DNA of 64,000 bases from Octopus sinensis (GCF_006345805.1 NC_043001.1:123442001-123506000), one strand, 5' to 3'. Counted from the first letter of the stretch, positions 40 to 55,373 are shown. Numbers and translations are program-made. The notes: generated by a model from the letters alone, not told the origin.

Positions 40-200
40 CTCTATCCGTTTTTAATCTGCCCTCTTTCTGTTTCATCTCCCCATTCCTTCCTGTAGAAGA
101 GCGTAGGCTCGAAACATCAGACTCTTCCATATTTCCTGAGCCTCAAGCTAACACACCTTGCTTATTGTTCCTTCATCTGTCTCCTTCATTTTGTATAAAT
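40..200 (+). mobile_element. Short repeat (family P1) with decayed minimal hammerhead motif at 91-118
   Basis: CTGTAGAA-gagc-gtag-gctc-GAAAC-ATC. The downstream tail is homologous to 10560-10650, 25820-25905 and 61825-61912. Confidence 0.55.
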
Positions 201-306
201 TTGAAACACACGCACGCAGATATATAAAAAACATGCAACACACACGCACACACACACACAAACACATATATATATACACGTACGTATACATATTGATCTC
301 AAATTT

Positions 307-493
307 GAGTACAAGGCCAGTAAGTTCGGGAGAGTGGTGAAGTTGCCTTCATCGACCACAAAGATTAACTGATACTTATCTTATCGACCCTGAAAGGATA
401 GAAAGCAAAGTCGATCTCCGTGGAATTTGAACCCACAACGTAAAGACGGACGAAATGCCCAGAGTGCTAAGGATTCTGCCAGCTTGCCGCCTT
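307..493 (-). mobile_element. tRNA-derived SINE family A, decayed copy
   Basis: Matches 17928-18158 (atcgaccc.gaaaggat.aaag..aaagtcga...ggaatttgaac...ctgccagct.gccgcc). B-box-like GTTCAAATTCC on the minus strand. Confidence 0.75.
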
Positions 494-704
494 TGTGTAC
501 ATAAATATATTACTTACAGTTACTATCGTATCATGATATACGCTATTCGCTCTAAACAGAAAGAAATGTAAGATGATATGCATGAGTCTACCGATATCAT
601 TTTTGTACCGATCGATACACATCGAATATGAACGGTTTATTAAGAAATGGGTAGGAATATAATTAGTTTTATGTTTCACTTCGCCTACTTCATATCTCTC
701 TCCC

Positions 705-870
705 CCTCTCTATCTATCTATCTATCTATCTATCTATCTATCTATCTATCTATCTATCTATCTATCTATCTATCTATCTATCTATCTATCTATCTATCTA
801 TCTATCTATCTATCTATCTATCTATCTATCTATCTATCTATCTATCTATCTATCTATCTATCTATCTATC
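705..870. repeat. (TCTA)n microsatellite
   Basis: Direct reading. Similar arrays at 1890-2030, 20370-20590, 21270-21370, 38100-38165, 50975-51150 and 59035-59245. Confidence 0.97.
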
Positions 871-1529
871 TCACTTTCTGTTTCTCACCCCTCTTTTTCT
901 CTACTCTTAATGCTTTTCTCTTTCCATCGAATTCTCTTTTCCTCTTTCATACTAGATTTCATTCATCTTCTGATCTTCCAAGAGATAATCGTTTATCATC
1001 AGAAGAGATATACACACAATAAGCGCGCGTACACACACACAAATACATATGCAAGCACACACATACACGCTTACGTGTGTAACACCCGTATATGCATATT
1101 TACGTATATATGTGAGTATGTACGTGTGTCTGTGTGTGTATATGTGTGGCTGTGTGTGAATGTTTGTGTGAATGTGTGTGTGAGTTTGTGGTGTGTGTGT
1201 GTGTGTGTGTGGACGCATGTTTAATATATATATATATATATATATATATATATATACATGTCTATGAAAAGACACTCACGCACGTGTTCGCACGCTTGTA
1301 CACACACAGACACTCATATATACATATATAAATATGTATATATATATATATATATATATATATATATATATATATATATATATATATATATATTATATAT
1401 ATATATATATATATATACATATATATATACATATATTCATGTATATTCACACACACATACATATGTATATATATATATAATATATATATATATATATATA
1501 TATATACATACTCAATTTTATTAGTGGTT

Positions 1530-1860
1530 TACCACCATTTTCAATATACCATGCAGTAAAGATTATGATAAGTGTCATTTGCATTAGTTTGATAACGAAA
1601 CATACACGTAATACACTACAACAATACAGAGTATAATCAACGCAATTCTCTGGTTGCTAAACACAGAGGATTCTTTTTGTACCAGGGAGGATAGTTAATC
1701 TTCAAAATGTGACCTTCTATCTTGGCCTTTTAATGCCCAAACAATAGGTTCTCCCGGCTATAATGGCATATTATGTTAACTAACCGATTTGCGATATTGG
1801 CATCGTTCTCTGGTATATATACAAATATGTCATCTGCCCCCTTTTTTAACATTGCACTTC
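1530..1860 (-). pseudogene. Possible very old Penelope-like RT fragment
   Basis: The minus strand reads ADDIFVYIPEN...YKKNP, weakly resembling the PLE RT motifs YVDDIF and VYRKPT. Stops are present. Confidence 0.2.
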
Positions 1861-52560: not shown

Positions 52561-54898
52561 GAGAGAGAGAGAGAGAGAGAGAGGAGAGAGAGAGAGAGAG
52601 AGAGAGAGAGAGAGAGAGAGAGATATCCCTAGCGTAGCATTCTGGAATACATTTGCGCTAGATATAATTGTGAAGATTCATGGGACTTGTCGAAACGGTC
52701 GAGCCGAATATAATGAAGGTTTTATAATATCACTCATATTGTATGTTTCTCTTATTTTTAATGTCTTAATCTCAGCGTCCTTTAAAGCCGATTAGAGATT
52801 CTATGTAGGATTATTCCAGTTAACTAAGGAAAGATGGGAATTGAACGTGATGTTACAAATCGAGCTTTAAAATTTGTGGTAGTTTTTACAAGTATGGAAA
52901 CCAAAAATCAGAATGCTGAAGATGTATGCATATTTACACACACACGAACACACACACACACACATGCTTACACGTACTCACACACACTCACACACATACA
53001 AGCACACACGCTCTCTCTCTCTCTCTCTCTCTCTCTCACACACACACACACACACACACACACATACACACTCTCACATACAATGGTAGTCTCTCGTATT
53101 TCGAGGCAGAGGGTTCTGCTATTTCTTGCTGAGCAATCTGCACACACGATCTGCTTATAGTGGTCAAATGTATGTGTTGTATATTAGCTCATTCTCCACG
53201 CCCCATCAAAACGACGTAACTTGAACAGTTGCACGGTGTACCTGTCATAGAGCAACCTGAAATGAGTTATTTTGCTCATGAACACAATGCACCGCCATGG
53301 ATTGAAATTGAATTGCATCCACGGTCTCACGATCGCCACTGCAACGGAATCCATATTGTTTCAGACCAATGGCGTTTTGTTGCTGAGGTATACAGTTGAT
53401 ATGAAATAGGTTTTCGATTGAAGGTATTCTAGTAAAGGACATCTCACGTTTTCAGATGTGGTAGACTCTGGACTTAACATTGCACAAGATATAGGCCGTT
53501 AGCTGACAGGATTGTTAACTCATCGGACAAAATTTCTTCCAGTTAAAATCTTGCGCAGTTCAAAGTTGTATATCATCTTTTGGGCGTCGATGAAAGGAAT
53601 GCTAGTCAAGTACTGGGACCGGTATAAACAATTAAACCCTACACAAAAATTTCAATATGCAATATATAAATATGCAATATATAAATTTTTAAGACACTAC
53701 ACTAGCATATAATTTTGAGGAAATTTTGATATTTTTCTACCACACAGAGTGACTTTTATAAGCTCCTCTCTTGACTTTAAGTACGAGTCTGCTTGATTGA
53801 TCATATGACTATATCAAAACATTGGCTATGTTACAATTAATAGAGAAGACATCATAGAAGCTATGGCGATATGATTCTATCTAACCTGTTTCTTGAGTCA
53901 GATATTTTTGCAGAAAGGAAGCTTTATTTCTTACTTCTATTGTAGAAAGCTACACTTCTATTCACTACCGCCTTCCTCTTGTTTTCTTTTACATATTACT
54001 TGTTTTGCTTTTTTTTTGTAATTATAGTCTGCTTTCTTTCAGTTTCTTGAAATACACCATATGACTTATAACAAACTTTCATTGATCGAATACTTTCTGT
54101 TTTATTCAATAAATTTCTTATTTCTTTTCTTACTTGATTTGGTGTCTTATTTATTATTTATTAAATGTTTAAAAACCCAATAATTAATACGAAATACGAA
54201 AATAACAATTATTTTCTCGTATAGAAATTACCATTATAATTTTTTGTTGTTTTCTTTTGCTATTATAAATTTGCCTCAAGAATTTCCTACTAAATTAAAA
54301 AGAAAAAATACCAGAAAAATATGACTTAAGAAATTCAAAGAGAATATATTCAAAAATTTCGAAAGGAAAAGATAATGAAAATAAAACAAAAAATAAAGAA
54401 AACGAAAAACTCATAAAAACAATCAAGGCTAAACTAACTAAAGAGACTTCTTTGTTCTTAATATGAAAATAGCAAAAGAAAAAAATATTGGTTTTTGAAA
54501 ATATAATTGATCGCTACAAGTTTCAAAAGCATTTTTTTTTTATTGTGATATCACACCCTCCCTACCTTACAATAACTATGGTCAATTTATGAGTTATTGT
54601 TCTATTGTTTGTCTTAAGACGGTGGGCAATCTCGACAATGCAAGGGTGAGATATGTATATTTTATATGCACTAAAAACTTCATCACGAAACCGTATCCTT
54701 ATTAGAATGCTGTTTTTTTATATAAGACAATGGATTTTGGGAATTTGTTTCATGGCATAGCATATTAGATTGATCAGGACTGTAGACAGAGTTCTCATGC
54801 ATGCTTTATATGTGTGTGTGTGTATGTATACATACATGCATATACATATATATATAATAAATCTCTGAGCGAGGTATAAACAGTAGCTGCACGACAAC

Positions 54899-55062
54899 GT
54901 GAAGTATATTTGCCACTTAAATGTGGTTAACCCATAAGAGTGGATGCTAATATAGCTTTTAGCCCCAGGAGAACACCTCCTCCAGCTGGTTATTGACACA
55001 CTTTCTTTGCCCTATAAGTACTAGCAAAGGGAAGCCATCCTTCGGTTTTTGACTATGAACAT
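54899..55062 (-). mobile_element. Family P2 copy lacking the ribozyme segment
   Basis: gtga.gtat.tttgcca.tt.aat.tgg.taaccc.taag.gtggatgcta...ttagccccagga...ccagctgg matches 13247-13410. Confidence 0.75.
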
Positions 55063-55120
55063 GTGTGTGTATGTAACAAAAGACAGAGACAGAAAATGGA
55101 ATATACGAGAAACTTTATTG

Positions 55121-55214
55121 CTCGCAACGGTCGTTACGACACATCCTGTATCGATCCCTCGAGGATGGGATACTGTGCAACTGGTTGTAGTGCAGACGCA
55201 TCTCGTCAGGTGAG
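55121..55214 (-). ncRNA. Hammerhead copy with core mutation (GAAA to GUAA)
   Basis: ctcac-CTGACGA-...-GTAAC-GACC-GTT-gcgag. Confidence 0.7.
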
Positions 55215-55279
55215 GTTAGGCAGTGAACATGTTTGATCGGTTTACGACTATGAACATACCCGATACTTCACTGCCTAAC

Positions 55280-55373
55280 CTCACCTGACGAGATGCGTCT
55301 GCACTACAACCAGTTGCACAGCATCCCATCCTCGAGGGATCGATACAGGATGTGTCGAAACGACCGTTGTGAG
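55280..55373 (+). ncRNA. Type I hammerhead ribozyme with branched 65-nt helix II
   Basis: ctcac-CTGACGA-g[...]c-GAAAC-GACC-GTT-gtgag. Perfect 5-bp stem I and G10.1-C11.1 present. Internal hairpins gatgc/gcatc and catcc/ggatg. Confidence 0.82.

Follow-up and report, generated by a model that had tools for sequence, protein, structure and literature searches.

Type I hammerhead ribozyme motifs and their relics in a 64-kb repeat-rich window of Octopus sinensis

Hammerhead motifs of the window

We analyzed a stretch of 64,000 nucleotides from Octopus sinensis (NC_043001.1:123442001-123506000; the whole stretch is hereafter referred to as the window), in which hammerhead ribozyme motifs had been proposed of the kind that is known from Penelope-like elements (PLEs) and from retrozymes. 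The window is repeat-rich, microsatellite-dense animal DNA, intergenic or intronic, with a G+C content of 29-37% along its length and at least 10% of its sequence masked as simple repeats ((TA)n, (TG)n, (ATGT)n, and (TAGA)n; e.g., 24287-24355 and 59364-60372). It holds at least five unrelated sequence families of hammerhead-bearing insertions, and our overall tally is four complete hammerheads, one probable variant, about six mutated or partial relics, most of which are mirror copies, and three to four sites that are not hammerheads. The original prediction of about 15 motifs was thus too high, only four to five cores being intact. That type I hammerheads of several unrelated families are present, as it claimed, was confirmed by the four complete motifs, minimal or canonical in form, which were recovered by both a structural descriptor and the Rfam model Hammerhead_1.

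In the type I descriptor, stem I had a minimum of 4 bp and was followed by CUGANGA; helix II had to close with 3 bp or more and could span up to 150 nt; GAA and a 6-14 nt A...U hairpin came next, with any residue but G allowed at H17. Applied to the window, it returned exactly the four complete motifs listed below, compared with 0.023 on average, and never more than 1, in dinucleotide-preserving shuffles (n = 300). Equal motif frequency in such shuffles, the outcome that had been named in advance as speaking against the motifs, was therefore not seen, and an observed count of 4 vs 0.023 expected excludes chance for the four complete motifs. Each is given with its segments in 5' to 3' order.

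13411-13455, minus strand: canonical type I hammerhead, complete; CACACG / CUGACGA / GAGG-UCAAUA-CCUC / GAA / ACUCGAGU / C / CGUGUG; descriptor and Rfam
22534-22621, plus strand: complete type I hammerhead; UUUCGG / CUGACGA / GUACGA...UCGUAC / GAA / ACGAUCGU / A / CCGAGA; descriptor, Rfam, and our own covariance model (E = 5e-4)
55280-55373, plus strand: complete type I hammerhead; CUCAC / CUGACGA / GAUGCGUCU...GGAUGUGUC / GAA / ACGACCGU / U / GUGAG; descriptor and Rfam
6833-6922, plus strand: complete but marginal type I hammerhead; CUAC / CUGAGGA / GUCUCC...GGGAGAU (G10.1-U11.1) / GAA / ACAAUUGU / U / GUGG; descriptor and Rfam (14.7 bits)

These motifs have the conserved core (C3-U4-G5-A6-N7-G8-A9, G12-A13-A14, A15.1-U16.1, H17 not G) in the three-helix type I layout, with an open stem I of 4-6 bp, a helix II closing with 5-9 bp, and a helix III of 2 bp plus a tetraloop, and the core is all that they have in common. 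The helix II domain measures 57 nt in 22534, 65 nt in 55280, and 63 nt in 6833. Cleavage is predicted after 22615 in 22534, with a (TA)n tract beginning 28 nt downstream, and after 55368 in 55280. In 13411, where the predicted cleavage falls between 13417 and 13416, the 6-bp helix I can be extended by eye via an asymmetric internal loop (UGUCA / U) to a 6-bp closing stem (UAUGAU/AUCAUA, 13404-13466), and loop 2 (UCAAUA) is near the Rfam consensus; no other motif combines an internal loop 1 and closing stem with a consensus-like loop 2. That the stems are unlike between families and still pair, as had been proposed, holds for the four complete motifs, in which 94.6% of cells were paired and 11 of 14 pairs had changed on both sides (45-column alignment, helix II interior trimmed), a count that is partly circular since pairing was a selection criterion, the shuffle test being the real statistic.

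At the Rfam gathering thresholds, a search of the whole window gave no match. The whole-window E-value mode was flooded by microsatellite hairpins (mir-297 and others), and its filters dropped the hammerheads; hence, we turned to local scans. Dozens of sub-threshold matches to microRNA (miRNA) precursors (mir-297, mir-466, and mir-3149) were rejected as microsatellite artefacts. The local scans aligned Hammerhead_1 (RF00163) over its full length (1-45) to all four complete motifs, at 32.2 bits for 13411 (E = 7e-7), 23.8 for 55280, 21.8 for 22534, and 14.7 for 6833 (E = 1.5). None of them reached the gathering score of 34 bits. The low scores of 22534, 55280, and 6833 are mainly explained by helix II insertions of 47-59 nt. 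Because helix II domains are long, a plain short-helix-II pattern likewise misses most of the true motifs: CTGANGA-N(4-30)-GAAAC occurred at three sites in the window and was ribozyme-like only at 13424-13449 on the minus strand. Like members of RF00163 and RF02275 (clan CL00010), the motifs align full length with all core nucleotides and three helices, whereas, unlike those members, all of them score under the gathering thresholds. We conclude that 13411, 22534, 55280, and 6833 are real type I hammerhead motifs that lie below the curated Rfam thresholds.

We further used relaxed descriptors (allowing a bulge, a U3-A8 pair, a minimal hammerhead without loop 3, or one core mismatch), which gave 0.5-1.1 matches per shuffled window and added only an AT-rich chance match at 41291-41397 and the following site.

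16824-16861, plus strand: probable hammerhead with U3-A8 core covariation; CAG / UUGAAAA / GGUC-UCAAAAU-GACC / GAA / ACCGGU / A / CUG

Here U3-A8 replaces C3-G8, helix II is formed by GGUC/GACC, H17 is A (predicted cleavage after 16858), and stem I has 3 bp. The relaxed descriptor expects 0.49 such matches by chance, hence the site is not significant on its own; it scored 19.7 bits against Hammerhead_HH9 (RF02275; gathering threshold 52). A covariance model built solely from the four complete motifs and used to scan the window found it at a window-wide E of 0.04. These scores point, if weakly, to a hammerhead core variant, which is plausible, and the same U3-A8 variant has been published for Schistosoma PLEs (PMC4209133).

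Loop III had been described as short and mostly self-complementary. This proved correct for palindromic helix III sequences of 6-8 nt, namely ACUCGAGU, ACGAUCGU, ACAAUUGU, and ACCGGU, and not for 55280, whose loop III (GACC, within ACGACCGU) is non-palindromic. Single-copy hammerhead folds lie 4-11 kcal/mol above the unconstrained minimum free energy (MFE), with 6833 at 4 kcal/mol. When two copies were folded together (ViennaRNA), the MFE structure was a double hammerhead for 13411, 22534, and 16824, with an intermolecular helix III of 6-8 bp; the 13411 dimer reached -33.9 kcal/mol vs 2 x -14.5 kcal/mol for the monomers. The predicted two-copy folds of 55280, with its non-palindromic loop, and of 6833 were not hammerheads. 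The proposed ability to dimerise is thus supported, at the level of predicted folds, for 13411, 22534, and 16824.

Relics and rejected sites

The core failed at seven of the proposed sites or pairs of sites (91, 10527, 9447, 10797, 48288, 55121, and 2225/2342). Three of the decayed copies have an intact or probable relative in the window.

55121-55214, minus strand: mirror copy of the 55280 ribozyme; 3 of 94 positions differ, two of them disabling (A13 to U, turning GAAAC into GUAAC, and a stem I mismatch)
6627-6716, minus strand: degenerate inverted partner of 6833, proposed as 6651; CUGAAGA starts at 6711, GAAACAAUUGUU at 6666
48288-48330, minus strand: decayed 16824-family copy, 86% identical across 184 columns; mutation at G5 and broken stem I

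On these differences, 55121 is presumed to be inactive. The site proposed as 6651 has retained CUGAAGA and the 3' half of the motif and has lost helix II and stem I pairing; the outer 44 nt of 6627-6716 are 86% complementary to 6903-6946. In 48288 the helix II closing pair, G-C in the 16824 family, has become A-U, a compensatory change. The minus-strand site at 10797 has lost the CUGANGA box, and its plus-strand partner at 11021 (right arm, 11022-11116) retains CUGAAGA together with GAAAC-GAUU-GUA and forms a stem I of 5 bp, but its helix II opens on a U-U mismatch; neither had an Rfam hammerhead match even at E <= 10. At 2225 (minus strand) and the site proposed as 2342 (plus strand), which actually lies near 2407-2440, only GAAAC-AGCU-GUU/GCU and a stem (GUGAAC/GUGAAU) are left and the CUGANGA box is absent. 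The 3' half in 2201-2460 resembles the 6651/6827 family, with the loop changed from AAUU to AGCU.

Other proposed sites were rejected. The sequence at 91-135 (plus strand) is not a canonical hammerhead, reading CUGUAGA-A-GAGC-GUAG-GCUC-GAAAC, in which the invariant A6 is replaced by U and which is not followed by GU-H. That at 10527-10556 (plus strand) is a look-alike of a minimal hammerhead (CUGUUGA-A-GAGC-AAAG-GCUC-GAAAC-GU-A); its position 6 is U, and its stem I has 3 bp. These two are mutually homologous, and neither had a covariance-model match, 10527 not even at E <= 10. The site proposed as 9447 (9440-9459, minus strand) reads GAAAC-GAU-GU-G, with G at position 17 and an upstream box CUAAUGA in which A replaces G5, and is not a hammerhead.

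A half motif, GAA-AC-palindrome-GU-H, occurred 18 times in the window vs 5.1 +/- 2.3 in shuffles (n = 300, maximum 11), an excess in keeping with a background of decayed copies. Of the half-motif sites, those at 3051, 27816, 32164, 32241, 35448, 38078, 41477, and 44773/44784 were rejected for want of a core, and the one at 42721 (minus strand) is a possible relic. At about 42700-42830 on the minus strand, just downstream of a dispersed repeat copy (42844-43087), we also noted CUGAUGA ... GAAAC-AGCU-GUA, a possible hammerhead relic in which helix II closes with 2 bp only.

The reading that would dismiss the whole list as what a loose pattern matches by chance in AT-rich, repeat-rich DNA does hold for part of it: 9447, 91, and 10527 fail at invariant core positions, relaxed descriptors match about once or less often in a shuffled window, and the Rfam gathering thresholds report nothing. 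Against it stand the strict descriptor, for which 0 of 300 shuffles reached 2 matches, the full-length covariance alignments of all four complete motifs, and mirror copies and palindromic loops, which the descriptor does not demand. For the four complete motifs it is refuted by the shuffles and the Hammerhead_1 alignments, and as a general account it is hardly credible.

Foldback units, microsatellite flanks, and neighboring repeats

The motifs sit in units of 240-375 bp that adjoin (TA)n or (CA)n tracts. Self-comparison and inverted-repeat searches revealed that four unrelated families form head-to-head foldbacks, in which ribozymes or relics point outward and have their 3' ends 25-50 nt from the outer boundary. 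This foldback geometry and the microsatellite flanks were no part of the original prediction. The units are as follows.

55071-55423, unstranded: foldback with arms of ~170 bp, 92% identical; a ribozyme in each; blastn self-match of 358 bp at 91.9%
10765-11139, unstranded: foldback with outward hammerhead-like relics; arms of ~180 bp, 90% identical; right end adjoins (TA)n; found by blastn
6627-6946, unstranded: foldback; outer 44 nt 86% complementary
2201-2460, unstranded: weak inverted pair; 54-nt arms, 74% complementary
13236-13477, minus strand: solitary unit with the 13411 ribozyme; ~242 bp; the ribozyme is preceded by a 22-nt leader and followed by a 165-nt 3' module
54899-55061, minus strand: second copy of the 165-nt 3' module; 81% identical; blastn and local alignment

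Each arm of 55071-55423 ends in ...UUGUUACAUA(CA)n, and this foldback scores as a long hairpin against miRNA-precursor models. No clear target-site duplication was found at the foldbacks, whose ends run into microsatellites. The copies at 13411, 22534, and 16824 are solitary and not inverted.

Symmetric, almost spacerless foldbacks of 260-375 bp that fold as long hairpins with miRNA-precursor-like scores could be non-autonomous DNA transposons, of the miniature inverted-repeat transposable element (MITE) or Foldback type, with hammerhead-like sequence incidental in their terminal inverted repeats and without a role in spread. The presence of a palindrome without a hammerhead (17603-17762) would agree with this. 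We consider such an origin highly improbable: four unrelated families share an outward hammerhead or relic at a like distance from the ends, which is hard to explain unless the ribozyme belongs to the parent element. Moreover, the missing target-site duplications, the ends in microsatellites, and the solitary, non-inverted copies all argue against it. Foldbacks of four unrelated families within 64 kb have equally truncated arms and almost no spacer, and the twin-hammerhead foldbacks might also be a mobile or regularly generated unit in their own right, e.g., hairpin-forming non-autonomous PLE derivatives that would yield double-stranded RNA. We regard this as unlikely.

The solitary 13411 unit lies between two (TA)n tracts (13191-13235 and from 13478 onward). 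Homology between the two copies of its 3' module begins at 13412, which lies 4 nt downstream of where 13411 is predicted to be cleaved, and the second copy directly adjoins the (CA)n tail of an arm of the 55071-55423 foldback. With two copies only, this start near the cleavage site is suggestive of complementary DNA (cDNA) made from self-cleaved RNA. It bears on animal non-LTR retrozymes, non-autonomous units of 150-450 bp with a type I hammerhead that would be transcribed in tandem, self-cleave, circularise, and be copied back. The 13411 unit fits a single retrozyme monomer in its size of ~242 bp, its AT-richness, its helix I of 6 bp and helix II of 4-5 bp, its internal loop 1, and its near-consensus loop 2, and a second module copy beginning this close to the cleavage site is what cDNA of self-cleaved RNA would leave. 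A 2026 preprint derives retrozymes from the pseudo long terminal repeats (pLTRs) of PLEs, so the retrozyme and PLE readings overlap. No head-to-tail tandem of any hammerhead unit was found in the window, however, self-blast giving inverted pairs only; the sole sizeable direct repeat (27707-28044 / 28137-28471) has no hammerhead; and in the remaining complete motifs helix II is atypically long and a loop 1/loop 2 architecture is missing. We therefore hold a retrozyme origin of the units to be doubtful. The many non-autonomous, ribozyme-processed retroelements inferred in the original prediction find no support in the window, except possibly in the 13411 unit; the motifs are solitary or head-to-head, the published signature of 5'-truncated PLE insertions.

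The direct repeat just mentioned comprises ~340-bp copies, 92% identical, at a 430-bp period inside a (CATA)n-type microsatellite, and has no ribozyme core. At 17603-17762 lies a 160-bp near-perfect palindrome (86%) without hammerhead features, a foldback of a different kind. Directly to the right of the 55071-55423 foldback we noted a repeat resembling a short interspersed nuclear element (55467-55600), which recurs at 46133-46236 and 35532-35647 and in which transfer RNA (tRNA)-like A and B boxes can be seen by eye (…TGGCTTAGTGGTTAGGG…GGGTTCGATTCCC…); its tRNA-likeness was read from the sequence, and ARAGORN called no tRNA gene across the window. Two dispersed repeat families were also apparent. 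The first is common, ~190-230 bp long with 80-93% identity, adjoins (TAGA)n, and occurs once as two tandem units; GAAAC-GU-U is present and a hammerhead core is not. The second is ~230 bp long with 75-92% identity.

350-456, 12635-12832, 17922-18154, 36492-36633, 37680-38095, 49380-49465, 58171-58523: copies of the ~190-230 bp repeat family
7671-7906, 26028-26257, 31659-31889, 42844-43087, 56121-56242, 58868-59022, 62031-62238: copies of the ~230 bp repeat family

Coding capacity in the window is slight. The sole Pfam-supported coding remnant is the C-terminal tail of a reverse transcriptase (RT) of long interspersed nuclear element (LINE) type, with a zf-RVT domain in a 319-aa frame (38846-39802, plus strand). 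This frame is 90% identical to a Logan contig, 77% identical to a contig of GCA_024449705.1, and ~53% identical to starfish, shrimp, coral, and sea-cucumber proteins. By its content, the window probably derives from a marine invertebrate. A protein search with the antisense open reading frame (ORF) across the 22534 unit gave low-complexity noise only. The translation of an open frame at 11589-11903 on the plus strand (…STKIVCRELQRFHGRAGFHRRAAIRKPLL) looks by eye like the N-terminal part of a Tc1/mariner transposase; it has no Pfam match.

Origin of the hammerhead-bearing units

Minimal type I hammerhead ribozymes (min-HHRs) were described from PLE pLTRs by Cervera & De la Pena 2014 (PMC4209133), who reported thousands of heterogeneous copies per metazoan genome, the majority of them single and 'probably related to truncated PLEs'. 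The same study reported dual min-HHR motifs 100-700 bp apart on opposite strands, as well as palindromic 15.2-16.2/loop 3 sequences and low, dimer-dependent activity. Canonical type I hammerheads are tied to tandem non-LTR retrozymes expressed as circular RNAs (circRNAs) (Cervera & De la Pena 2020, PMC7229834). The statement that such motifs mark PLE pLTRs and retrozymes is therefore borne out by the literature (PMC4209133, PMC7229834). Publication of the phenomenon in 2014-2021 also removes the novelty that the original prediction had implied.

Like the published PLE min-HHRs (PMC4209133), the motifs of the window are of type I, with a stem I of 4-6 bp and a helix III made of A15.1-U16.1, C15.2-G16.2, and a palindromic insert; they vary extremely between families within one genome, are mostly single and dispersed with some opposite-strand pairs, and include the U3-A8 variant. 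Unlike them, they have no A9/G10.1 bulge and carry 47-59 nt helix II inserts, and the window has no RT/GIY-YIG ORF or direct pLTR pair. PLE insertions are known for heavy 5' truncation and for a 5'-truncated copy that adjoins them in inverted orientation; they target microsatellites, (TA)n among them, and bear hammerheads near their 3' ends (Craig et al. 2021, PMC8557442). The window units share the 5' truncation, the head-to-head inverted copy, the (TA)n microsatellites, and a hammerhead near the unit's 3' end, whereas their foldback arms are truncated near-equally with no full-length copy after them, and no 30-40 bp 'tail' was recognised (PMC8557442). The signature of 5' truncation, adjacent inverted copy, and microsatellite target was found at 55071-55423, 10765-11139, 6627-6946, and 2201-2460. 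With animal retrozymes (PMC7229834) the window shares low-GC units of a few hundred bp and the type I hammerhead, the helix sizes and loop 2 of 13411 being those of the classical Schistosoma/newt type; retrozymes are defined by head-to-tail arrays and circRNA, in contrast to the window, which has no tandem. Every feature has precedent. The departures are that the 9/10.1 bulge is missing, that helix II domains are very long, and that the two arms of a foldback are equally truncated.

We favor, at a probability of roughly 70%, the reading that most motif units are severely 5'-truncated, often inverted PLE 3' ends, with 13411 possibly a solitary retrozyme-like monomer. Several findings weigh against it. 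The unpaired nucleotide between A9 and G10.1, a published hallmark of PLE min-HHRs, is absent from all four complete motifs, and their helix II inserts of 47-59 nt compare with a published stem of 7-8 bp. The 13411 ribozyme is of the canonical type that the literature ties to retrozymes (6-bp helix I, internal loop and closing stem, UCAAUA loop 2). Two metagenome scans with the hammerhead pattern retrieved no further copies from public collections, the first giving 0 matches and the second 3 chance matches in GC-rich, bacterial-type sequence. Pfam searches of the longest ORFs and of all non-low-complexity ORFs of at least 75 aa found no RT or GIY-YIG remnant in the window, which leaves architecture and literature, rather than a physical connection, as the basis of the link to PLEs. 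Truncated copies are not expected to retain an ORF, and thus its absence does not exclude a PLE origin.

If the units do descend from PLEs, 3'-terminal pieces would have been inserted in 5'-truncated form in or beside (TA)n/(CA)n tracts, often with a second, inverted copy head-to-head. The RNA of an intact motif would fold into the three-helix junction and cut after H17, leaving a 2',3'-cyclic phosphate and a 5'-OH. With a helix III of two base pairs and a self-complementary tetraloop, a lone copy would favor other folds, whereas in two copies ACNNNNGU may pair to give an 8-bp helix III that joins them in a double hammerhead. In parent elements arranged in tandem, such dimeric cleavage could reduce long transcripts to single units. 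The copies in the window are probably mostly dead on arrival, because they are solitary or inverted and several are mutated.

The result adds instances rather than a principle, since reports of highly variable, dispersed type I hammerheads linked to PLEs and retrozymes go back to 2014 and cover many animal genomes. It illustrates that true motifs of the self-cleaving type which fall below the Rfam gathering thresholds can be spotted by plain reading of a sequence; standard repeat annotation would probably call these units unknown foldbacks or leave them unlabelled. The 13411 ribozyme is a good candidate for activity, and the long-helix-II hammerheads are also notable leads. If hammerheads were as dense throughout the genome as in the window (about one per 13 kb), their density would be about tenfold above the copy densities published for Schistosoma or Xenopus. 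The head-to-head geometry of the units bears on the mechanism of PLE integration, which is poorly understood.

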